From NCBI RefSeq assembly GCF_963676685.1, contig NC_092353.1, forward strand, positions 17,918,001 to 17,982,000: a DNA stretch of 64,000 nt, in the 5' to 3' direction. This document shows, in pieces, positions 25,101 through 60,800 of the stretch (the stretch's first letter is position 1; every line of letters begins with the position of its first letter). The translations under genes were made by a program, and so were the position numbers. Under the pieces are notes generated by a model. It did no database searches. It was not told the DNA's origin and worked only from the letters and a program-made list of their open reading frames with translations. Origin of the DNA: Mytilus edulis (Eukaryota).

Positions 25101-28100
25101 AATGGTCATGATGTTAAACTTGATGATTGATTGTTGATTATAATGGTCAATTAAGAGAGTCAGAAGCACCTGAAATTCGCAGGCTTTGAATTCACAAGCT
25201 TAGTGGGGACAGGCTAGTGATACAGTAGATATTCTGAGGCCCCTCTAAAACTTTAATATATTTTTTAAAATATAACACGGCCTAACATTAATCTTGACCT
25301 CGCTAAAACAGGAATTATTTGACACAAACTGTATGTTTTTGTATTTTATTATTTAGGTAGTTGATTATAGCACAATGCTGACAGAAGTACAGAATATAAA
25401 TACAGATTCTGGTATCAGTCAAGTATGGGTGGCATTTCAATGTAATTATGCTCTATATTCAGCTCTTAGTTCAAAGGTTGGTAGTCATTACAATATAAGT
25501 CTTGAAATATAATGGAATTTACAGAAAAGTAAAAGTTATCAGGCCCTGAAGAAAAGCCTTTATAAGGTATCATCCAAAAAACACATAATGCCAGCTAAAA
25601 AAGTTAAGTTTATTGCTCAAACCAAAGTAAGACTTTGATTCAGAACCAGATTTTCTGTTAAAAAAGGTTTAGGGGAATAAGTCTGTGGCAGTTATTGCTT
25701 TTAATGTCAGCAATTTTGAATATCTATACTATTAGATCAGAAGATTTAATTTTTGTTTGTTGCTTCTCATCCTACATCCCAATAAATTAATCATCATGCC
25801 TTTGAGTTCCAAAGGTACCATGCATAGTCACATTTCATAAAATTTGCCAGTCATAAAATCTTTTACAAAAATTCCTCCTACAACAGGTTACATATGTTCA
25901 ACCATTCTCTAAATGCTCACAATTTTGCAGATTATGTATGTGTATTTGAAATTTTTTTTTTTTAGAAAGTTCATCAAGCTAACACTCCAGCTGCCTTGAT
26001 AAAGACCAGAAAGAATGCAATAGAACAACAAGGCATGAGAAATTCACATGTAAGTTTTATTTCTTTCAAATGTTAGAAAGTTAAAACTGTTTATTCGTTT
26101 AATACTTTCAATTCTGAAATGTGTGCAATGTTTTATTATTATGATAATTGTGATGGGATAGGTTAAATTTTTGCAAATTTGCACATTAACATTCAAAATT
26201 AGCATTATTTGTTGGCAGTGATTTCTGAAGTTTGATAATTAATCTTTGCATTTTTGTACATTGATCAAATAGCACAATAATAAAAGCTTAAATTTTTGGG
26301 AATTTAAAGAACTTCTTCCTTGTCTGATTTATGAAGATATCATTTCAAATCAGAATTATTTATTTTGTCACTCATTTTAATAAAGAAAGATAGAAAAATC
26401 AAAGCAATTTTTATTAGAAATTTTCAAAATGTTGGCATGAATTATAATTTCTTCTGAAGTTAATTTTTGTGCTGCTTAGTTTTAAAATTTTGACATTTCT
26501 AGTACCAGATTTGGTAACAGCTGAACAAGAAGCAACAAGACATACAAATTTTGAATGAATGAAGATACTAATATATGCTGAGATCTGTCTGGGCATTGTC
26601 AGTTCTGCTTGTATTAATTGGAGATGGCAGCCAGCACATGTATTCTGTTTATTTCACATTTGCATCATTAGGAATGTTTGTTTAACAAAACAAACTGCCA
26701 TATTATTATTTTACTTTAAAAATATAGATATAATTCTTTATGATACTAAAATGGAAAAATACCAGATTCTATTTTAATGACAGCACAACCAAAGTATGTC
26801 AATTTTCAGATCTTTTTAGATTTATGACTTCTAGAATGACATTTGAACTTTTCAGAGATTTATATATTTTTAGAAAAGAGATGCAGTTGCACTGATTACC
26901 TTCATAGCCAATTTAGAGAAAACTGTAAGTACAAAAGACATGATTTTTGTGCATTCATTGCATTTGAGAGATAAATTTTTGCTTTTCAACCTGGGGTCAA
27001 AATAAGCAATGGTCCAGTGGTCGGAGACCAGTAGAATTTGCATCGGACCAGTAGATTTGGCAAGATGGTGATCTCGCCAACTTATAGAAATTTGTCAAGA
27101 AAAATCATTGATAGCATTGTGATCACACTTTTTTGTATCACACTTTACAAAAAAGTGTATCTACCAAAACAATTACATGGTACTGTGGGGTACCAAGTAT
27201 TATATTTTATCTTTTGTCATAAATGGGGGACAGTTAAGTGCAGCATAGCTATATATATAGGGATACAGAAGTGACGTAGGGTTTACCATTATTTCATTTA
27301 ATTATCTAACATTCATACACTAATATAAACTGTCTTTATGTAGGATCATTTCATAAACCTCGACCAGTGAAACATCTCTTTTTTGTATCTTTGATAGATG
27401 AAAGATGGTACAAAGGAATGGACAGAGGTATCAGCAGCATTAGACCTCAAAGAGCATAGATTGTAAGATATATTTGATATTCTAGATAGATCTGCTGCTG
27501 CAGGTTTAAGATATAGACTAAGATAACTCACATTTGAGGATGTTCCAGAAATTTGATTTTGGTAAATTTTTAAGTCTTCAGCTTTCATTTTTAAGTTGAC
27601 CATGGAGTTCAAATAGGTTTAAATGACAAATTATTGTATTAACTCAGATTTTGTTGTTGCCTGATACAGTTGTGGCTGTGGTTAACAAAAGGTCAAAGTT
27701 CTGGTTTAACTTGCAGATAAGTTAGTATGCATAATTATTATAAAGATATATACTGAATTACTGATCTGCAGTTCATTGAAAATGGAAATGTGAGTGCGAG
27801 CAGGGCATGGTGTCAACTATGGAAAAATATTCTTGCATATAAATAGCTATGGGAATTTCCTATAACTTTGAAAAAATCTTCACCTTGACCTTATATATAT
27901 TGTCACAGAATGTGACTGATAGAAGCCTGTTTCCTTTATGTTTTTTTTTTTTCATATTCACATGAACATATTGTATTGTGTAAATTCTAAAGAGGATTGA
28001 TAAAATGATGTATGATTATTTTTCAATTTAGATCTCAAGAAAAAAACCGAGGTTTGAGTTTTTCCAGTATTTCAGCTGTTGGTAGTAATGGAGCCATTAT

Positions 28101-31100
28101 TCATTACCACCCGTCTGCAGACACAGACAAAAAGTTATCTCTCAATGAAATGTATCTTCTAGATTCTGGTGGTCAATATTTGTAAGTTATTATTTTATTT
28201 CCAGCAATGCTGAACATAACAGAGGTTTAAGTTTTCCAAGTATATCTGGAAGTGGACCTAATGGGGCAGTTATACATTATTTTCCGACACCAGCTACTGA
28301 TAGGAAATTAAGTGTTGATGAAATGTATTTGTTAGATTCTGGTGGCCAGTATTTGTAAGTTAGCTTTGTTCTAATGCTGACTCTGACCACATATAATCTT
28401 TATCATTAAAAGGACAGCTTCTTTCTGTTTGCTACAATCTTAACTTTCATGCATTTTCAGACTCTGATTTATTGCTTTATTTTGTTCAGCTGAAATGACT
28501 TTTTCTTTCACTGCTGCACTCGGACTGCTTATATTTTCCTGTCATACATTTTTTTTTCATTCTTCAGATCTTAAACAATTGTTTCTTTTATTTCTAAAAA
28601 TTCATAATGATAAAAGTCTTGACAACTTATTGCAGAAAGATAGAATGCATTGTTTTTTTTGACAAAATTAATATATCATTGATGGCATATATTTTAAAAG
28701 TTTACATATTAATGCCTTTTCATAAGTTCCAATGATGGTAAAATGTTTTTAGTGGCTAAACAGGAAAGACGGGTTACATAAGAACAGTATTTTGAAATTT
28801 TCGAGTTAGTATTTAAGTATTGCATGTATATCCAAGATAAAAAGTAATATGAATGTACAGTAGCATGAACTTAGTTGTGAATGTAACAATTCTCAAATGG
28901 AGTTACTACCCTTTGTACCTTGAAATATTTTCTAATAAAAAACATAGATGACACAAGTATCCATTAGTTTCATATGAGAGGAATTAAACTTGACATGGTT
29001 GTATGGCACATATTTATTTTATTTCACATGTGAAAAAAATGATAGCGGCTATCCTTTATAACTTAGAAATGGCCTGTATAGAGGATTGAATAGAAGGGAT
29101 GTGTACTTATTCATGACACAAAATATTTCTCCCAAGTTAATTAAAGCTAAGAAACAGTATCTTAATTGCTGCTCTTCATTTTAATTCACAATATTTTCAA
29201 CAGAAAGTAAAAAATCACAAGTTTTAAGATGACCCTTAGCAACAGTAGGGCTAATTTCATTTGATACTCTCGAGTTAACTTTACTTATTCAGGTTTCAAC
29301 AAAATGATTTTACTTGAACCACTCAAGTTAACCCCTCGTACCCTGGTTCCAACCCTCAACGAGCCACGGTTAAACTCAAGAAACTCTTGAATGACATCAA
29401 ACCAATGAGAATATTTTATTTTTTATGCTTGGTCAGGGCCTTACCCTAGAGTTACTTAGAGTTGTTCCGAATATCAACTCTTGTGCGTTCACTTGATAAT
29501 CTATTAACTCTGAAGTCGATTGTAGAGTTTCAAGTGAACTCGACCTAGGAGAAAGTCTTTGTTAGATGTTGATAATATTACTTCTGTACATTGAAGACTG
29601 TCACAAAGGGGAATAGTTTGTAAATGTGCCTTACAATTTATGATTTCTCCACTCTGAACACATATAATCTTTATCATTAAAATAACAGTTTCTCTCTGTT
29701 CACCATAGACTTTACTTTCGTGCATTTTAAAACTTTGTGTTACAGCTTTATTTTGTTCAGCTGAAAGGTCTTATTTTTTATGACTACTTATATTTTTCTG
29801 GCATACATTTATGTTTCATTCTTCCAATCTTAATGTTTAATTTATTGCTTGATAATATTCTTGACATCTAATTGCAGAAAGATAGAATGCATTGTTTTTT
29901 TGACAAAATTAATATATCATTGGTTGCATACAAGTCCACATTTGGACATTTGAAAAGTTAACATATGATAAATGCCTTTTCATAAGTTTCTACGACAGTA
30001 AAATGATTTTGTGGCTAAACATGAAAGACAACTTCACAAGAAAAATATTTTGGAATTTCAGATAATATTCAAGTATTGCATGTATATCCAATAGAAAAAG
30101 TAAAATGAATATACAGTAGCATAAACTTAGTTGTGAATATATCATGTATGGCAGTTAATTGGTTTTTGTATGCTGTGTAATTCTCCATTAGAGTTATTGC
30201 CCTTTGTAGCTTGAAACATTTTCTAATAAAATAAATATAGATGACACAAGTACCCATTTGTTCCATATGAGAGAAATTTTAAAAACTTAACATGGTTGTA
30301 TGGTACCTATTTGTTCATATTTCATGTGTGGAAAAAAAATCATAGAACTATTCTTTATAACTTAAAAAATGGCATGCAAAGAGGATTGAATAGACAATGA
30401 TGGAAGGGATGTGTAATTATTTATGAAACAAAATCTTTCTCCCGAGCTATTTAATATTAGGAACAGTATTTATTGTAAGTGGCTATATATTGTTTTGAAA
30501 AAATGTAATGATTGAATAAAAGATTAGAATATTCCATTATTTTGTAGGGATGGAACAACTGATGTGACAAGAACATTCCATTTTGGTTCTCCTACAGCAT
30601 ACCAGAAAGTAAGACATTGTCACAAATATTACATCTTTAATATTACACATAGTACTAGTTCAAAACTTATTCATTTTGCTTGTGGTCTCCGAGGTGGCTA
30701 AGTCATCTTCTTTTTTTTATGCCCCATTTATAGGCATTATGTTTTCTGGTTTGTGCGTCCGTTTGTTAGTCCGTTTGTTGCTCCCACTCAGGTTAAAGTT
30801 TTTGGTCGAGGTAGTTTTTGATGAAGTTGAAGTCCAAACAACTTGAAACTTAGTACACATGTTCCTTATGATATGATCTTTCTAATTTTAATGCTAAATT
30901 AGAGGTTTTTCCACATTTTCACGGTTCATTGAACATAGAAAATGATAGTGGGGATGGGGCATCCGTGTACTAGGGACACATTCTTGTCATAAGTAGTTCT
31001 ATCACTACCCAGTTAACTTTGAGGTTATGAGTTTGTACCCCCAATTGTGCTGGTGCACTTAACTCCAATCTTTAATTAACTAGCATTGTCAGTTTTCTTA

Positions 31101-34100
31101 TTGAAAGTCATTGCTTTCTCCAAGCACTCTGGTTTCCTCTATCCATAACAACTGACAGCCTCAAAATAGGCCAAAAATGGCGCTTAAAAGTTGCGTTAAA
31201 ACACCAACAATCAATTTATATTCCTTTTGCTTATGTTTGTGTTATAATGTTTTTTCAGATCTGTTTGACACCTTCTTTATGTTTTGAAAATAAATTGAAT
31301 TATGAGTATATCTTGTAATTCCTCATATGTTTATTTATAGTGAATATAAAGATATGTTATGGTTTTAAATTAAAACATCTATATGTTGATGATAATATTC
31401 CTTGATCTTGAAATGATTGATTTTGTAGGAGTGTTACACAAGAGTTCTGATGGGACAAGTAGATTTAGCTCGCATTTTATTTCCTAACACATTATATGGT
31501 AAGTTAGGATGTGACTTCCATCACAAAATTGTCACAATGTGAAACTTAAAATAACAATGTGTCTCTATATTGGGTTTATTTTAACCTTTATGTGAACTAA
31601 GTATGATAATTACAGTAAGATTAAAAGATTTCAATTAAAATATGAATGCACTTCTTTGTTACTGCAGGAATGTTACACTCGTGTCCTCATGGGTCAGGTT
31701 GACTTGGCCAGATTTAAGTTTTACAAGGGGCCCCATGGTCCCTATGGTGAGTTATGCACCTTGTTTGTACATATAGAAAAGCATGTATTTAAAAGTTTCT
31801 TCTGTTAACACCCATATATCACAACCATAGATAATAATCATACTAATAAATAACAGAAAAGAGTAAAATGAAATACCACACGACAGAGTCGAGGGCTGGT
31901 TTAATAACAACCATTTAATAATATTTATCATATATATATAGAGAATAATACATGGCAAAATCCGTATCATATGTCGTATCATCCCGAGACATCAATATCA
32001 GCCCAAGGGCCTTTAGGCCCGAGGGATGATATTGGTCGAGGGCGATACGGCATGTGATACGGATTTTGCCATGTATTATACGCTTTATCATATATTTCAA
32101 CAGAAGAGTATTATATTATATGAACTGTTTTCTGATCCATAGCACTGGGTTACCTTCAGTTCTACTTTTGTCTTGTTTCATAGGCCTTAAAAGAACTGCT
32201 CAATTACTTATCCGAAGCACCTGGGTTACCTTACAATTTGCGTGCTGTTGTTTTAAAAATATTTTGTTTATTATTGTATTAATTTGTGTGTTTTGTATTT
32301 TTCATAGTTGCATTTAGTGTGCCAAAAAATATGATAACTTGACGTTCGTGACGTCACATACAATGTGAAAACTCGACGTTCGTGACGTCACATACCAAAC
32401 AATGACGTCATTCAAAAAATTAAAAAAAGTAGGGGTGTGATAAAGGGTAGGGGTGTGATAAAGGGTATGCGATAAAGGGTGCGCATCAAAGTTGCGCGAT
32501 ATGGATTAAAGAGCAGGCTATTTATCACATATGCAAAACTACTGTATTTACTACTAAACATATGATAAATTTCAATAAACACAACCATTAATAAATCAAT
32601 CAATCTCTTAATGCATGATACAAAATATCAAATAACATGGATACATAAATTAACATGGCATATCAAGTAGACCCTATTGTGCCAATTGATTAAACTGCAA
32701 AAATCACACAACAAACTTAACCTAAAATGCCATCCATGGGCATACAATTCAGAAGAAATAATTTCATTCTAATTCATAAAATCATCCGACTGAAATTATA
32801 TTTTTGATGAATTGAAATGTTGTCTTTTCATCACACCCATTGTCTTATTATGTTTTGGGGTCATTCATCAAAATGAAAGGATGTGTTGTTTTTTTGTTTT
32901 TTTTTTTTTTAAATTTGTTCAAATGAAGCCTTTGTATATAACTTATTCTTTTTTTTAAATTTTGCATGATATAACCTTAGATTGTGAGGGTAGAAGTAAA
33001 CATGTAAAATCTATTTAGAATGTACCATGCTTGAGTGAGTTAGTGTTTGCATGGTTTGATTTCATGTATAGTTTATTTATAATTTAATATAGATGTTAAA
33101 GTGATGTAACTAGTGTGGTATGTTATATACTACAATTCTCCAATATGTTATGCATCAGATTATACAGCTAGATGTCATTAAGGGAACAAACAAGGATATT
33201 ATAAGTTTTACATTTATAATAGTTTGTAACACAATTTAGAATAAGGCGTTGCTGCAAACATTTTGGAGTCTTGTAGTTTTCCCTTTTTCGCTCTGCATTT
33301 TTTTGTGAAAGCAAATACTTAGAAAGTAATTGTGCATATCATGCTTATTATATTATGGTGAGGTTCAGCTCTTTAATTTTGAAAAAAGTTTGTTTTTGTT
33401 AAGAATTACAAACTTTGAGAAATGTCTTTTGTAAATGTATAAAAACTCAAAATATATAGGTAAGAAGCTAATTTTAAAAGGTGGTACCAAACACATTCCC
33501 TTAAAAAAATTTGACTTATTTTAATTTTCATAAAATTTTGACAAATTTTTACTTTAACCATAAGACAAAAATATGAATATTTCAAAAAAATTGAACCCAC
33601 ACTATATCGGAAAAGTTTCATTGGACAAATAACAGTTTGACTAACACCAATTTTGATTGTTAAAAGCTTTCTATTTCCTGAACAATAGAACGTAATGAAT
33701 ATTTTCAGCTGATTTCTACAGAGTTATCTCCCTGTAGTGTTATGTACCACATTTGTTGTGCATATTATATATCTGTAAAATGCAGCTCATTAGTTTGGAT
33801 TTTATCTAAAAACAATGTTTAAACAAATTATTAGTGATTATAAACCAGTTAATATTCTCAATAATTCTATTAAATCCGGAAAATGAAAAATGTTGAAAAC
33901 AAGTAATGAATGGGAGATAACATTGGTTGTTGTGGTTTTACATACATTATCTCCCTTGTATATCATTTATTAATAATAACTAGAAAAAATATTCCAAGTA
34001 ACAATAACAAAATAACTTTTTATTTATTTAGAGCTATAAAATTGAGAATGGAAATGGGGAATGTGTTAAAGAGACAACAACCCGACCATAGAAAAAAACA

Positions 34101-37100
34101 ACAGCAGAAAGTCACCAATAGGTCTTCAATGTAGCGAGAAATTCCCGCACCCGGAGGTGTCCTTCAGCTGGCCCCTAAACAAATATATACTAGTTCAGTG
34201 ATAATGAACGCCATACTAATTTCCAAATTGTACACAAGAAACTTAAATTAAAATAATACAAGACTAACAAAGGCCAGAGGCTCCCGACTTGGGACAGGCG
34301 CAAAAATGCGGCGGGGTTAAACATGTTTGTGAGATCTCAAACCTCCCCCTATACCTCTAGCCAATGTAGAAAAGTAAACGCATAACAATACGCACATTGA
34401 AATTCAGTTCAAGAGAAGTTCGAGTCTGATGTCAGAAGATGTAACCAAAGAAAATAAACAAAATGACAATAATACATAAATAACAACAGTTAACTGACAT
34501 GCCACCTCCAGACTTCAATTACACTGACTGAAAGATTATGATTTCATCATATGAACATCAGGCACAATCCTTCCAATAGTTTATTTTTATAATCATAGTT
34601 TGTTGTTGCTAATGCAAAAACCAGCACATTTTAGTTAAGTTCATAATATGAAGATCAAATCATATATCAAAATCTCATGTATTTCATTTTAAAACAAAAA
34701 AAACATGTATTTGATATTGTATAAAAAATGTAATTAGCCTGTAATAGTTTGACTACACTGTCACCAAGAATACTGTACAGTACATAACACATGAATTCAA
34801 AACATTATTTCACTTTTACAGAGGAGAAACATAATCATACCTAATATTTGTTGTCAAAGAAAAATTTAATCAGTTCCCTTCCTTGACTTTGACCTGAAAA
34901 GTTTTTAAACTATGATACCTATATCTTGTTACTTTAACATTTGGTTGCGTTTTGTGGTTTAAGTTGAAAAAAGAGGCAGTATAATATTCACACTGTGTTC
35001 GTTGTTTTACACTGCCTTCTATAATGTGTTTAAGTTGACATTGAAAAAGTCAAATAAGAAAAAGGAAAGTCGCTAAACAAATGGCAAAATGAAAAAATTT
35101 AACACAGACGTCAAACGAATGGAATTGTTTCTGTAGGATCAATTTTGAGCTAGAATGCATTAAGGATAAATTATTAGCACACAACATTTTTAAATATCTG
35201 TGCATAGTACACTTCAATTACATAACATTCAAGTTTTAAAGCTTTATTATGTCGAGATTACTACTTCCATATTAATTATTTTTAGGACGTGAAATTGATG
35301 CAATAGCCAGAAGACCATTATGGGATGTAGGTTTAGAATACAGACATGGCACAGGACATGGTATAGGGTCATATCTCAGTGTACATGAAGGTAGGTTTAG
35401 AATACAGACATGGCACAGGACATGGTATAGGGTCATATCTCAGTGTACATGAAGGTAGGTTTAGAATACAGACATGGCACAGGACATGGTATAGGGTCAT
35501 ATCTCAGTGTACATGAAGGTAGAATATATATCTAACAAAAATGATCAAAAAATATTAAGTTTTAACCAGTTCCAGATTGTATGATGAAAATTGATTATCC
35601 ATATATAAATGAGATGAATAAGATGAATGGAAAAATAGATTGAAAAACAATAAAAAGATGAATTTAAAAAATATGCTTCTTTATGCAATGCTTGAGCATG
35701 CATTAAACATTAAGGAATTTAAGATAAGGTGGAGAAAAAGAACTGAGACTTTAAGAACTATTTTTTTTTCATTTGCCACTAAACACATAGAAAACTCTAT
35801 TTACTAGATTTCCAATGATAATGTTGTACCGGTATATTATTTTATTATTAAACAGGTCCAGGAAGAATTTCATTATCTCATGCCAGTTTTGATAGTGATG
35901 AGAAGCTGGATGAGTTCATGTTTTTCTCTGATGGTAAGTCCGAATGTCTTATATAGATATAGGAAAATGTGGTATGAGTGCCAATAAGACAACTCTCCAT
36001 GCAAGTCGTAATTTGTAAAAAGAATACCAATATAGGTGAAAGTATAGCCTTCAACAGAGAGCCTTCGAACACACCTAAACAGCAAGGTTTAAAGGGCTCC
36101 CAAAATGACTAGTGAAAAAAACAATGGTTTAATTTATATACAAAATGAGAAACACTTATGAACCACTTCAACTAACAGCTACCACTGAATAACAGTCTCC
36201 TGGCTTTGGACAGATGCATAAAAATGCAGCAAGTTTAAACGTTTTAACAGGCGCTAACCTTCACCATAACCTGAGATAGGAGTGTAACATTACAACATAA
36301 ATAAGTTTGTTTGAAAAATGTTTTACAATAATTTACACCATAAAAGACAAATTTGAGATAATAAGTTTAACATATACAAAAAAATGTATTCATTTTCAAT
36401 AAAATTGAGAATGGAAATGGGGCATGTGTCAAAGAGACGACAACCCGACCATAGAAAAAAACATATATAATTTTATAAAAACAATATTGGTAGGTTGGCA
36501 TATATATGCAACATGTTAGAAATTAATGTAATGTTGAAATATATACATTATTGTCGAGCCTGTAACTTTTGTTGCAGAAAGCTCGACATAGGGATAGTGA
36601 TCCAGCGGCAGCGGCGGCGGTGTTAGCTAACTTCTTAAAAGCTTTATATTTTAGAAGGTGGAAGACCTGGATGCTTCATACTTTGTACATAGATGCCTCA
36701 TGTTACGAAGTTTCTGTCAGTCACATGTCCAATGTCCTTGACCTCATTTTCATGGTTCAGTGACCACTTGAAAAAAAAAGTTCAAATTTTTTGTAATGTT
36801 GAATTCTCTCTTATTATAAGTAATAGGATAACTATATTTGATATGTGCGTACCTTGCAAGGTCCTCATGTCTGTCAGACAGTTTTCACTTGACCTCGACC
36901 TCATTTCATGGATCAGTGAACAAGGTTAAGTTTTGGTGGTCAAGTCCATATCTCAGATACTATAAGCAATAGGGCTAGTATATTCGGTGTATGGAAGGAC
37001 TGTAAGGTGTACATGTCCAACTGGCAGGTGTCATCTGACCTTGACCTCATTTTCATGGTTCAGTGGTTATAGTTAAATTTTTGTGTTTTGGTCTGTTTTT

Positions 37101-48800: not shown

Positions 48801-51800
48801 GTTTAATTCCAATGGTGTCAACTTACAAGGGGTAATAATTCCATCAGAAGATGCACACCAGGTATGTTTTTTAGGAATAAATTATACAGTGTACATTGTG
48901 TAAAATTATAGCATTTCAAAATTTGACCATAAAAATACAAATTTATTATTAACTTTTAAAAAAAAACTGAATTTGATATTGTCCCAGAGATGATCGTGAG
49001 CTATTTGAAAGGATATTTATATAGAGAATTTGAAGAAAATAACAGCATCATTTAAGTCTTGTTTCAAGCTTTGATTAAGACAATTAATTTAAAGGAAAAA
49101 AATATAGAAGGTAAAATATCTTCATACAACACTATAAATGTATAAAAATAACTATAGCCAATCTTATATATTTGAAGGACAGATAGTTAGTGGTCAGTTG
49201 TAATGACAGTAGTACTGTTAAATAAGAACATTTATTATTCTAATCAAATCCATTGATGGGCAACATGACATGTACACATACAACAATACATCATGATTTG
49301 TAACAGAAAAAAACCCATTTTTTTATAAAATTGAAATGATATAATATAATATTAAAAGTTCAGACAGATGTTATTATCTTCATTGTATATAAGTCACATA
49401 CATTTAATTCCAGGCAGGACCTGAGAACTGTACAATCATTATGATTATCATTGTTATGACATATATTAATTGACATTCTGTCTAACATCTAGACACGTAA
49501 TTATAAAGTTTCCTATATATTTACACATTATATAAACACATTACTTTGGTAAATAACCAAATAATTTTGCCTCATTTGGAAAATATGAAAAATTAAAACA
49601 AATACTGTATCTCCTTGAAACAGTTCTTTGAATGCTGAACAACTAGTAGTAAAATGTTGTTCATCTTCAACTAGATTTTCTTACAAATAAACTCATCATA
49701 GATACCAGGATGAAATTTTCTTATTTATGCCAGACGCGCATTTTGTCTACAAAAGACTCATCAGTGACGCTCGAATCAAAAAATGTTTAAAAGGCCAAAT
49801 AAAGTACGAAGTTGAAGAGCATTGAGGACCAAAAATTCCTAAACGTTTTGCCAAACACAGCTACGGTAATCTATTCCTGAGGTAGAAAAGCCTTAGTTTT
49901 TCAAAAATTCAAAGTTTTGTTAACAGTTAATTTATGATTATGAACATATCAATGATAACTCAAGTCAACACAGAAGTGCTGACTACTGGGCTGGTGATAC
50001 CCTCTGGGAAGCCTTTGGTCTCTTTCTATATGTAAAGTTTAAAATACCTGTTATCATTATTCTGATCGAAGCAGTTACTTTTTGCACACATACCTATATA
50101 TTGATGAATACTATGTTGATTAATTGATTTTGTTATGTTTGTTTTTTGTGTTGTGGGTCACTGATTTATTAATGTGAGTCCTTCTTCTTTTATCAATACC
50201 ATAAGTAACCATACAAGATGCCAAATTACATCCCTTGCACTTGAATTTTTGTTGGGAAAAGTAAGGCTTGTTTTAATTTTATGTATATTGTGTTTTACAC
50301 ATATAAAATTGAGAATGGAAATAGGGAATGTGTCAAAGAGACAACAACCCGACCAAATAAAAAACAAAAAACAACAGCAGAGGGTCACCAACAGGTCTTC
50401 AATGTAGCGAGAAATTCCCGCACCCGGAGGCGTCCTTCAGCTGGCCCCTAAACAAATATATACTAGTCCAGTGATAATGAACGCCATACTAATTTCCAAA
50501 TTGTACACAAGAAACTAAAATTAAAATAATACAAGACTAACAAAGTATGTCTAGAATTAAGTACAAAGGGCTCATGAACAAATTAATTTTACATGTTATC
50601 ATCCTGAGGTGCATGCAATTTTTGGCAAATGAAATAACACATCCATATATCAATATATTACAATTTTAGAGTGAGTTCCCAGCAGAGTATGATAAAAGAA
50701 GAGCCTATATCTCTGGATACGATGGATCACATGGTAAGTATACAATATATTACGATTTTAGAGTGAGTTCCCAGCAGAGTATGATAAAAGAAGAACCTAT
50801 ATCTCAGGATTCGAAGGATCACATGGTAAGTATACAATATATTACAATTTTAGAGTGAGTTCCCATCAGATTATGATAAAAGAAGAGGCTATATCTCAGG
50901 ATTCGATGGATCACATGGTAAGTATACAATATATTACAATTTTAGAGTGAGTTCCCAGCAGAGTATCAGATGAAAGAAGAGCCTATATCTCAGGATTCAA
51001 TGGATCTCATGGTTTGTATCAGATTATTGTTCTGATTGTTGTAGTGTAAATTAATAAGAATGAAATCTTATGTTTGCCTGTCTAATATCAGGGATATAAA
51101 TTTACAAATCGGAAATGATTAATACCCTCAGTAACTAGTCTGAGGACACAGTTATTGCCCTTTGGGTTTTTGTTGTTTACAAATATAGTTCCAAGTGTGA
51201 TCGGTGTATAACTTGTAATTTTTTTCACATACTTTCCCAATTTATTTTTTGATATTTTATGCATGAAATATTAGGTATAGGGATGAAGTTACATGTTTGG
51301 GTGCTGAATATTAATGTTAAGAAGGGATTTGGCCTAATTGAAAAAGGTAAAAACATAGATTGTCTGAAGCTGTCAAACTGAATTTAAGAGCCAGTGCATA
51401 GACTTTTGTTGTCTACCCTTTGATCAGGTTGTTGTCTCTTTCACATATTCCCAATTTCCATTCTTAATTTTATATGCTATAATTTTGATAATATTTGTTC
51501 AGATAGTAGTACACTACACTGTAAAAATCTTTTTGAGAGCATAAGAAAAAGGTAAATTTTATTCCCTACTATCATAGGCTGATGACCTGGCACCATGAAG
51601 ATGATAATAATTCATATAATGTATCCTTTTGATAGGTTTAGCTATAGTATTGAAGGACAAAGCTGCACTATGGACTGATGGTAGATACTATACCCAGGCT
51701 GAGAACCAGTTAGACTGTAACTGGATACTTATGAAACAAGGTTAGAATGCCTTCAAATTTATTTTTAGTTGTTTTGAGTAGTTGATTACATAAATAGTGG

Positions 51801-57800: not shown

Positions 57801-60800
57801 TTGTTTTAATTTCAACATTTGCATTTATACTATCGTCATAACCCAAAAGATAGACATGCATTATTTCTGTGCATGCATTTAAAGATCCTGCAGAAAATAA
57901 AATCTTTACCTAAATATTTGGCAAAAGTGACTACCTCTTGTTTGGTCTTTTGAATTTTTTATTTTTATTCTCATTTTGTATGCAGATGTTATAGATTCCC
58001 AAAATCCTCCACCTCTTTAGGTAAGAATCAGTAAATGTAAATAAAACCCTTCTTCCATAATGGATAAACCTCTTATGGGTCATTTTTTTGAGGGCTCATA
58101 CATAATTGGTTGAATGTTTATGATTGTTTTAGGTGAAAAGTGGTCAGTTTCCTGTTGCAACTGAGCTATCTGCAGCCAACCAACTGGACTCATTCAGAGG
58201 GTGAGTTAATAGTCTTTGTCATTTAATCTACTTTTCATCCTTGTTTATCGTGACTGCGACTTTGCGACAATACATCTCTCGCTGCTTGTAAACATTTGAA
58301 AGAGATATTGTTTTCTTTTTGAATTTATATTTTTGTCAGTGAAGTAGCCGGCACTTGAAGCCACCGTAAATGGCGGATTTCTGCCAGCTAGCAGCTTCAA
58401 TGGAAAGCCCTGGTGTTGTTGTCCATGTAGCATTGTTTGTGAAAAGTATATCCTCTGTTTTGTCCTTTATATATGAAGAAGTCTAAAATTTCCATTCTCA
58501 ATTTTAAAGTCTAAAATCCATATTTCAGAAGAGAGATCTACAACAGAGGTACCAGTTTCCCAACCCTGTCAGCTTACGGAACTAATGCTGCTATCATCCA
58601 TTACATGCCAAGTTTGTCTACAAATGTAGAGATCAAAACAGATAACATGTATCTTCTGGATTCTGGAGGACAGTATCTGTAAGTACAAAATAATTAAAAA
58701 ATCTACTGTGATGAAATTTAAACATCCATTTTATTTAAACTTGTTTAGTAGTTGTTTTGAATTTAAATTCTTGTATTAATGCAAGTCATTGTTTTGTCCC
58801 GGAAGCTCTTTACAACAGAAAAATAGTATAAAGATAAATTCCTGGATTCAGAATGAATACTACCTTACTTTAGCAGAGATAATGGAGTTTTTATTGTTAT
58901 TTTTTCCTCAGGGATGGAACCACTGATGTGACACGTACATTTCATTATGGAGTACCAACGAATCGTCAGAAGGTACATAATTTTGATAATCATTTTTCAA
59001 ACAATCATATTGAGTGTATTGTTGGTCATTTTTTGGAGAATTTGTATAAGTTTAAGATTAGAAATGCTGTGAGAAGCATATACAATAAATAAAGTTCTCA
59101 ATATGAAGAACGACACTAGAATTGTTGTTTCTTTGAAAATAAAAAAAAAAGAATGGTTCCTATATTTTATGCTGTTTCTGTGTTATTTATACTTCATCAA
59201 ATGATTTCTTTAAATTAAAGGTTTTATTTGTGTCATAAAAGTACATATCATATGACATCATTTGAACTACTGTACATACTAAAAATTGAAAATTTATTTT
59301 GGACAGGAATGTTACACTAGAGTTCTGATGGGACATATCGACCTGGCTAGATTTATTTTCTATAAAGGAGCATATGGACCCTATGGTAGAGAAATAGATG
59401 CTATAGCCAGGAGACCACTGTGGGAAGTTGGACTAGACTATAGGCATGGGACTGGTCATGGGGTAGGGGCATATCTAAGTGTGCATGAAGGTATTTATTG
59501 GTTGAAATATATTTTTATGCCCCACCTACAATAGTAGAGTGGCATTATGTTTTCTGGTCTGTGGGTTCCATTCCTTCGTCCGTCCATTCGTCCTGCTTCA
59601 GGTTAAAGTTTTTGGTCAAGGTAGTTTTTGATGAAGTTGAAGTCCAATCCACTGGAAACTTAGTACACATGTTCCCTATGATATGATCTTTCTAATTTTA
59701 ATGCCAAATAAGAGTTTTTACCCCAATTTCACGGTTGACTGAACATAGAAAATGATAGTGCAAAAGGGGCATCCATGTATTTGGGACACATTCTTGTTAA
59801 TGGGATGTTTTTATGTTTGATACTTAAATTCTTTGGGTAAACAGACGTTAAGCATCCAACAATCAATCAATCAATCTTTGGGTAGACCAAATAAATAGTA
59901 AATATTTACTCTTGAAAATCTAAGAAGACAAAACATTTTCTATATCAAGACAATTTTTGTATTGCATTGCATCACATGAAAAGCTGTAAAAAAAGTAAAA
60001 AAAGTCTCAAATCAATGAGTATAAGGAAATTCATTGAAAATAGACCAATACATTTTTAGCTCACCTGGCCCAAAGGGCCAAGTGAGCTTTTCTCATCACT
60101 TGGCGTCCGTCGTCCGTCGTCCTTCGTCCGTCGTCGTCGTCGTCCGCCGTTAGCTTTTACAAAAATCTTCTCCTCTGAAACTACTGGGCCAATTTTTACT
60201 AAACTTGGCCACAATCATTATTAGGGTATCTAGTTTAAAAATTGTGTCCGGTGACCCGGCCAACCAACCAAGATGGCCGCCATGGCTAAAAATAGAACAT
60301 AGGGTGTAAAATGCAGTTTTTGGCTTATAACTCAAAAACCAAAGCATTTAGAGCAAATCTGACATGGGGTAATATTGTTCATCAGGTCAAGATCTATCTG
60401 CCCTGAAATTTTCAGATGAATCGGACATTCCGTTGTTGGGTTACTGCCCCTGAAATGGTAATTTTAAGGAAATTTTGCTGTTTTTGGTTATTATCTTGAA
60501 TATTATCATAGATAGAGGTAAACTGTAAACAGCCAAAATGTTCAGTAAAGTAAGATCTACAAATAAGTAGTCAACAGGACCAAAATGGTCTGTTGACCCC
60601 CTTTAGGAGTTATTGCCCTTTATAGTCAATTTTTAACAATTTTTCGTAAATCTTGGTCATCTTTTACAAAAATCTTCTCCTCTGAAACTACTGGGCCAAA
60701 TTAAACCAAACTTGACCACAATCATCATTGGGGTATCTAGTTAAAAAAATGTGTCCGGTGAACTGGCCAGCCAACCAAGATGGCCGCCATGGCTAAAAAT

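Follow-up and report, generated by a model that had tools for sequence, protein, structure and literature searches.

Two intact alternative copies of an active-site exon lie 23 nucleotides apart in an aminopeptidase P gene of Mytilus edulis

In the 64,000-nucleotide stretch of Mytilus edulis DNA analyzed in the current study (the window), an exon carrying two active-site residues of aminopeptidase P is present as two neighboring copies, 15a and 15b. Both copies are intact, are under selection and occur in expressed, spliced RNA, in proportions that vary between samples. The use of one copy or the other is supported by contig geometry, contig depths and RefSeq models. The explanation considered probable as a whole combines an old tandem duplication, the choice of a single copy per transcript, and steric exclusion, the last being suggested by the 23-nt gap. 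The pair is real, but alternative splicing of this kind is ordinary, and RefSeq already contains both forms.

Exons 15a and 15b, together with a further pair (17a and 17b), belong to gene 1, which extends from about 12.8 to 43.6 kb of the window on the + strand, as do all exons described here. The exons of this gene were searched singly, and full-length comparisons were made with RefSeq proteins. The upstream constitutive exon, exon 14 (27398..27462), ends in CAT AGA TT, is followed by the donor GTAAGA, and showed a 100% tblastn match to residues 417-438 of RefSeq protein P0206. The last codon of exon 14 takes its third base from the copy that follows, giving Leu with 15a (TT/A) and Phe with 15b (TT/C). 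Exon 15a (28032..28181; 150 nt) is bordered by AG at 28030-28031 and GTAAGT at 28182-28187, and exon 15b (28205..28354; 150 nt) by CAG at 28202-28204 and GTAAGT at 28355-28360; neither has a stop codon in the reading frame that exon 14 dictates. The spacer, as read from the sequence (28182..28204; GTAAGTTATTATTTTATTTCCAG), consists of the 15a donor followed directly by the pyrimidine tract and AG that belong to 15b. The downstream constitutive exon, exon 16 (30548..30608), also had a 100% tblastn match, its joint 30608>31429 was found in 4 of 4 runs, and its first G finishes a Leu codon after 15a and 15b alike. An earlier note had described two stop-free 150-nt exons of the same phase, each with its own AG and GTAAGT, separated by 23 nt at 28182-28204, and this description was confirmed on the sequence and by the coordinates.

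Each copy aligned to residues 378-420 of human XPNPEP1 (3CTZ), and position 24 (His) and position 44 (Asp) of both exons aligned to residues 395 and 415 of that structure. In M24B aminopeptidase P, His395 belongs to the substrate site and Asp415 is the first metal-binding Asp (PMC5774706); the earlier statement that this segment carries both residues held for 15a as well as 15b. Searched alone, the two exons scored 32.8 and 34.9 bits against Pfam PF00557 (Peptidase_M24; cut-off 23), and the matching RefSeq proteins carry PF16188, PF01321, PF00557 and PF16189. Judged by eye, the sequence of P0308 appears to begin with a signal peptide and to end in a hydrophobic tail. Gene 1 is assigned to the XPNPEP type of aminopeptidase P, and the putative signal peptide and GPI-type tail would fit the membrane (XPNPEP2-like) form.

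Between 15a and 15b the same residue was encoded by 34 of the 49 full codons (69% amino-acid identity); 15 of 49 differed, or 16 of 50 residues when the junction codon was counted, in line with the roughly 15 differences claimed earlier, and the peptides quoted in support of that claim were exact. The 16 differing positions surround the His, including those two before (I/V) and two after (H/F) it; the isoforms may differ in catalysis. Nucleotide identity was 101/150, and this 33% divergence ruled out an assembly or haplotype artefact as the source of the pair. The flanks could also be aligned, over approximately 16 nt on the acceptor side and over GTAAGTTA on the donor side, which fits a tandem duplication unit of 173 nt. 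Many synonymous changes had been noticed previously, and 17 codons with synonymous-only change were counted. The value of pN (0.213) was far below the saturated pS (0.738; Fisher p 2.7e-8), indicating that purifying selection has kept both copies. The proposed comparison of dN/dS between 15a and 15b likewise gave values well below 1 (0.05-0.28, depending on the method). A tree of this segment (49 columns, 57 proteins) lacked resolution: 15a and 15b were placed apart in the ML tree, holding them together was not rejected (AU p 0.21), and 15b grouped with the Logan transcript P0216 (93/74).

Expression was assessed from contigs of two runs, X1 and X2, which come from two studies and are presumed to be RNA; their GT..AG joints show spliced molecules. 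In run X1, a contig of 1846 nt with a depth of 12.5 covered 15b (28205-28354) with exact exon ends. The GT..AG joints 26049>26874, 26924>27398 and 30608>31429 had the same depth, and this equality indicates that they point to the 1846-nt contig; joint 26924>27398, which leads into exon 14, was present in RNA contigs and in reads. Exon 15a was found on a separate contig in both runs, covering exactly 28032-28172 at a depth of 2.4 in run X1 and exactly 28032-28181 at a depth of 9.0 in run X2. The latter run also contained a 192-nt 15b contig with exact exon ends and a depth of 5.4. The ratio of the two copies was thus reversed between the runs, corresponding to an approximately eight-fold shift in relative use. 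In runs X21 and X24, raw-read depth over both exons was about 0-3. A repeat at 30676-31073 was highly expressed in the reads.

The low depth of 15a in run X1 would be expected if only one copy were functional and the other were a decaying or noise-level duplicate tolerated by annotation pipelines. This reading is very improbable and already largely refuted, since 15a was the commoner copy in run X2, catalytic motifs and splice sites are whole in both exons, three Mytilus species retain both, and the substitution pattern described above is that of constrained sequence.

The 15a contig of run X2 is composed of 30+150+25 nt. If the flanks are common to 15b, this is the layout of a k=31 bubble, as the first base of the two exons differs and their last 5 nt are identical. 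Such a contig, with 15a on its own between bubble-type flanks, speaks against joint inclusion of 15a and 15b, which would hold the frame (150+150 nt) and create a 50-residue internal repeat in the catalytic domain. Joint inclusion would moreover require the splicing of a 23-nt intron; retention of the spacer in the mRNA would give TTG TAA, an immediate stop; and among the RefSeq models of three Mytilus species none contained both exons. We regard it as extremely unlikely.

The RefSeq models of M. edulis, M. galloprovincialis and M. trossulus contain four combinations of 15a or 15b with 17a or 17b. Exon 15a was 100% identical to M. edulis isoform X3 and to M. galloprovincialis isoforms X2 and X4, and 15b to M. 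edulis isoform X4. Together with the spliced contigs, these alternative isoforms bear out the earlier proposal that one gene makes two exon-15 forms. In M. trossulus, isoforms X6 and X7 skip both copies, so the rule of one and only one copy is not absolute. The RefSeq entries with the same exon-15 and 17a/17b variants (M. edulis XP_071133424/5, M. galloprovincialis XP_076078058-62 and M. trossulus XP_063404104-8) differ from the present description in that they are automated models, which describe neither the 23-nt spacing nor the mechanism or function. Exons 17a (31429..31498; 70 nt; joint 30608>31429; RefSeq isoforms of 714 aa) and 17b (31668..31746; 79 nt; RefSeq isoforms of 717 aa) are likewise alternatives to each other, in the catalytic domain that contains 15a and 15b. 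As each length is 1 mod 3, the use of both exons would break the frame. The two length classes of this pair are also present in oysters.

In the proposed mechanism, a 173-nt unit consisting of acceptor tail, exon and donor head would have been duplicated in tandem long ago, giving two copies of the His/Asp exon. Each transcript would use one copy, and with 17a and 17b four enzyme forms would result. The U1 particle bound at the 15a donor would compete for one stretch of RNA with U2/U2AF bound at the branch site and pyrimidine tract of 15b, and a 23-nt lariat intron presumably could not form. Commitment to one site would then block the other, and the unchosen exon would leave as part of the flanking intron. 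We infer from the sequence that the spacing enforces exclusivity in this way. Upstream of the 15b acceptor, candidate TNAY branch sites were found only at 8, 13 and 16 nt, in or adjoining the 15a donor, the next one being 68 nt away, within 15a; measured from the 15a donor, the candidate branch adenines of the spacer are at 7-15 nt. To our knowledge, a 23-nt intron would be far below any metazoan spliceosomal intron, and a steric block would therefore be sufficient whatever else acts. Hatje et al. 2017 (PMC5740500) assign 9% of human clusters of mutually exclusive exons (57 clusters) to steric interference, where donor and branch point are <50 bp apart. In the present pair, 23 nt separate the donor G of 15a from the acceptor G of 15b, which is within the steric limit of <50 nt. 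The statement in the earlier note that 23 nt is below the practical minimum of a spliceosomal intron agrees with this limit (PMC5740500) and with general knowledge.

Other enforcers were considered. An incompatibility of U12 and U2 splice sites was rejected, as both donors are GTAAGT (U2-type) and indeed identical over GTAAGTTA. Enforcement by frame or NMD was also rejected, as 150 is divisible by 3 and double inclusion stays in frame. The exons could be alternative with their exclusivity and choice set by trans-acting factors or competing RNA structures, the 23-nt gap being a relic of the duplication. Many clusters of mutually exclusive exons are governed by such factors or structures (PMC6071210; PMC7797038), and the eight-fold difference in use implies that some regulation of choice must act on top of any steric block. 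However, no docking/selector-like pairing or competing structure was found around the pair: the local fold had a z of 0.40, long-range pairing was unconvincing, and the inverted repeats were AT-rich and either 73-88% complementary or 14 nt long. An origin of exclusivity in such factors or structures is therefore considered unlikely. Steric exclusion appears to be the only enforcer that the sequence offers.

Substitution of tandem-duplicated exons within an enzyme is known from PKM exons 9 and 10. As in the mussel pair, homologous exons are swapped in the catalytic/regulatory core, giving isozymes of one gene; unlike PKM, the mussel gene belongs to another enzyme family and has two such clusters in one catalytic domain. 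Exons 2 and 3 of alpha-tropomyosin were reportedly described by Smith and Nadal-Ginard in 1989 as mutually exclusive by steric interference. In these exons and in the human clusters of PMC5740500, as in 15a/15b, the first donor is too near the second branch point or acceptor. The mussel case differs in that the whole gap is 23 nt, with donor and acceptor signals abutting, and in that its mechanism is deduced from sequence. A literature search found no paper on the 15a/15b splicing event. The novelty claimed in the earlier note was overrated: existing annotation includes the isoforms, the mechanism is a textbook one, and alternative forms of this segment occur in Mya arenaria. While the pair opens no new mechanism class, it is a compact natural case of exon swapping in an enzyme active site, and the steric model lends itself to a minigene test because the gap is unusually short. 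With four isoforms of a single gene, a filter-feeding mollusc could have proline-specific peptidases of several specificities.

In Mya arenaria, isoform X1 of a xaa-Pro aminopeptidase 1-like protein differs from isoforms X2-X6 (XP_052807402 and others) in the homologous segment. The alternative segment corresponds to exactly the same 50 residues with His and Asp, and its divergence is similar to that of the mussel pair. A broader reading is a tentative possibility: the membrane-type aminopeptidase P of bivalves may be a combinatorial isozyme gene, with catalytic-domain swap clusters at 15a/b and 17a/b (three variants in scallops) and another in Mya, which would tune the S1/S1' pocket to Xaa-Pro peptides by tissue. 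Exon 15 would have been duplicated more than once (Mytilus and Mya), and the spacer would act as a switch between U1 and U2 occupancy, with the 15b branch site on or in the 15a donor region. A tandem exon-15 pair was found at 0 of the 80 metagenome loci matched by the b-like fragment P0003, whose own contig has a single exon-15 copy within 4.2 kb. Two exon-15-like ORFs each were seen on ENA contigs (P0154/P0155 and P0152/P0158). In one older M. edulis gene model, 15a is merged with 15b, as is gene 1 with gene 2, which calls for caution in genome annotation.

Exons 15a (28032-28181) and 15b (28205-28354) of gene 1, which encodes an aminopeptidase P, lie on the forward strand and are each 150 nt long. 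Translation showed that both are open in the frame fixed by the upstream exon; 15a is preceded by AG at 28030-28031, the forward-strand spacer between the exons (28182-28204, 23 nt) ends in CAG, and each exon is followed by GTAAGT. This is exactly the arrangement of two same-frame, stop-free exons with their own splice signals that the earlier note had claimed, including the spacer length, which can be read directly in the sequence. The difference of about 15 residues corresponds to 15 of the 49 full codons plus the split first codon (Leu with 15a, Phe with 15b), i.e. 16 positions; the other 34 full codons encode the same residue, and 101 of the 150 nucleotides are the same. The flanks are alignable too (about 16 nt on the acceptor side, GTAAGTTA on the donor side), so that the pair has the look of a tandem duplication with a unit of 173 nt; the spacer is a donor head joined to an acceptor tail.

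Comparison of 15a with 15b gave a pS of 0.738, which is saturated, and a pN of 0.213 (Fisher p 2.7e-8), in keeping with the many synonymous changes noted earlier. The dN/dS, proposed earlier as a check, was 0.05-0.28 depending on the method, well below 1. Every catalytic motif is preserved in both exons, as are the four splice signals, and both variants were found in three Mytilus species, with 0-2 changes each. The duplication is old, and selection has kept both copies in working order. A tree of the 49-residue segment was without resolution overall; 15a and 15b were not sisters, holding them together was not rejected (AU p 0.21), and 15b grouped with the transcript-derived protein P0216 (93/74). 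No tandem pair was found among 80 metagenome loci with the exon-15 segment. Two pairs of ENA fragments (P0154/P0155 and P0152/P0158) each comprise two different exon-15-like ORFs with the same longest-contig figure within the pair (6.76 Mb in one, 556 kb in the other). This suggests that the two members of a pair share a contig, where they may be exons or genes in tandem.

Each exon alone scored above the cut-off for Pfam Peptidase_M24, and each aligned to residues 378-420 of human XPNPEP1 (3CTZ), where the His pairs with His395 and the Asp with Asp415, as expected for a segment said to carry the substrate-site His and a metal-binding Asp. In the human enzyme, Asp415 is one of the catalytic residues in the binuclear Mn2+ binding cleft, and His395 belongs to the second shell that surrounds the substrate site (PMC5774706). 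The 16 differing positions include those at -2 (I/V) and +2 (H/F) from the substrate-site His; the loop that leads up to it shows several exchanges among Pro, Ser and Ala, and the metal-binding Asp is preceded by K/R, L/V and N/D. Exon 15b is closer to the human enzyme (53.6 bits) than 15a (41.1 bits). It is plausible that the two forms differ in substrate preference or kinetics.

Expression data over 25900-31850 came from two presumably RNA-derived contig runs of different studies (X1 and X2), which bear the organism label of the best DNA sources, and two raw RNA-seq runs with a related label (X21 and X24). Usage of 15a and 15b was taken from contig depth in X1 and X2, the raw-read depth over the exons in X21 and X24 being too low to quantify. 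In X1, a 1846-nt contig (depth 12.5) spans exactly 28205-28354, i.e. 15b. The GT..AG joints 26049>26874, 26924>27398 and 30608>31429 have the same depth and therefore point to this contig, which is the 15b+17a form, the same as M. edulis RefSeq isoform X4. A distinct 152-nt contig of X1 (depth 2.4) starts exactly at 28032 in 15a and includes 11 letters that are not a continuation into the intron. Run X2 has a contig of 205 nt (depth 9.0) made up of 30 nt, exactly 28032-28181 (15a) and 25 nt, and one of 192 nt (depth 5.4) made up of 30 nt, 28205-28355 (15b) and 11 nt. For two paths between common flanks in a k=31 graph, a flank of 30 nt is expected where the first base differs, and one of 25 nt where the 15a and 15b paths have their last five bases (TATTT) in common; judged from these lengths, the flanks of the X2 15a contig would be exactly those common with 15b. 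The 15a:15b depth ratio was about 0.2 in X1 and about 1.7 in X2, and exon use therefore differs between samples. At 28238 in 15b, the main X1 contig and four X24 reads carry a synonymous A>C change (CCA>CCC, Pro), which reflects a transcribed polymorphism or a difference between species.

Both forms are already in RefSeq; a literature search found no paper describing this splicing. Isoforms X1-X4 of M. galloprovincialis and X1-X4 of M. trossulus cover the four possible pairings of 15a or 15b with 17a or 17b, the variants being freely combined, and M. edulis has 15a+17a (X3) and 15b+17a (X4). With the separate contigs of both runs, these isoforms bear out the claim that one gene uses two catalytic-exon variants. 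No model of the three species contains both exons. In M. trossulus X6 and X7 (P0226, P0225) the whole cluster is skipped in frame (...LKEHRL|DGTTDVTR...), and the predicted protein, lacking the His395 and Asp415 equivalents, is presumably inactive. An older M. edulis model, CAG2241101, joins part of 15a to 15b and also gene 1 to gene 2, and is an annotation artefact. The homologous 50 residues are precisely where isoform X1 of Mya arenaria departs from X2-X6; X3 is distinct in another segment as well. Scallops and oysters have only single annotated forms of exon 15; their exon-17 segment has three variants in scallops and two in oysters, in the same two length classes as forward-strand exons 17a (31429-31498, 70 nt; joint 30608>31429 in all four runs) and 17b (31668-31746, 79 nt), alternatives within the same catalytic domain.

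Several means of enforcing exclusivity were considered. Because each exon length is divisible by three, a transcript with both exons would keep the frame and could not be policed by NMD; retention of the spacer leads at once to TTG TAA. U2/U12 incompatibility was rejected, both donors being the same U2-type GTAAGTTA. No convincing long-range pairing was found around the exons, and no local RNA structure was supported there (z 0.40). The spacing would thus be what remains as the enforcer. An intron of 23 nt would be far shorter than any spliceosomal intron known in metazoans. The spacing is also below the donor-to-branch-point distance of <50 nt by which Hatje et al. 2017 defined steric interference, which they found for 9% of the human clusters (PMC5740500). 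Upstream of the 15b acceptor, the only TNAY candidates are at distances of 8, 13 and 16 nt, which puts them 7-15 nt from the 15a donor; the next one is inside 15a. The likeliest picture is a direct occupancy conflict, in which U1 at the 15a donor and U2/U2AF at the acceptor region of 15b would compete. Contig geometry, depths and RefSeq models support that both exons are never included together. In its working the pair resembles classic mutually exclusive splicing of the steric type, with the sequence-level features of that class and, as in most such clusters, an origin by tandem exon duplication; it is a real and tidy example of this known kind, its steric block being inferred from the sequence. 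Another factor must bias the choice between samples; no cis element with this role was found.

Exons were searched singly, by reference, and full-length comparison was made via RefSeq proteins. Mapping of the returned proteins placed two forward-strand genes in the window, gene 1 at about 12.8-43.6 kb and its tandem paralogue, gene 2, from about 48.7 kb to beyond 63.2 kb. Gene 1 is 97%, 96% and 94% identical to the RefSeq isoforms of M. edulis, M. galloprovincialis and M. trossulus, respectively, which assigns the window to a mussel of the Mytilus edulis complex. By eye, its protein has a hydrophobic N-terminus and a hydrophobic C-terminal tail, and seems to resemble the membrane-bound XPNPEP2 type. 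Gene 2 has a single copy of the exon-15 segment (58529-58678), 57-60% identical to 15a and 15b, and a search of the mussel's own genome returned these three and, elsewhere on the contig, two single copies that are more distant. One N-terminal exon of gene 2 has an array of three tblastn matches at 50670-50940.

Two repeats were observed in gene 1. In the intron after exon 16, the element at 30676-31073 was covered by RNA at a depth of 10^3 to 10^5 in each of the four runs and had many joints going back 163 nt (30950>30788). This looks as though other parts of the genome held tandem copies of a unit of about 163 nt and transcribed them strongly. At 35327-35522 lies a perfect tandem repeat (64 nt x 3.1, 100% matches), which starts from the donor of exon 35285-35389 and copies that exon's last 64 nt, encoding the HGTGHG metal-ligand His region. 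Each unit opens with GTAGGT, and only a single donor keeps the frame because 64 is not a multiple of 3; the repeat reflects a duplication of very recent date or else an artefact of assembly.
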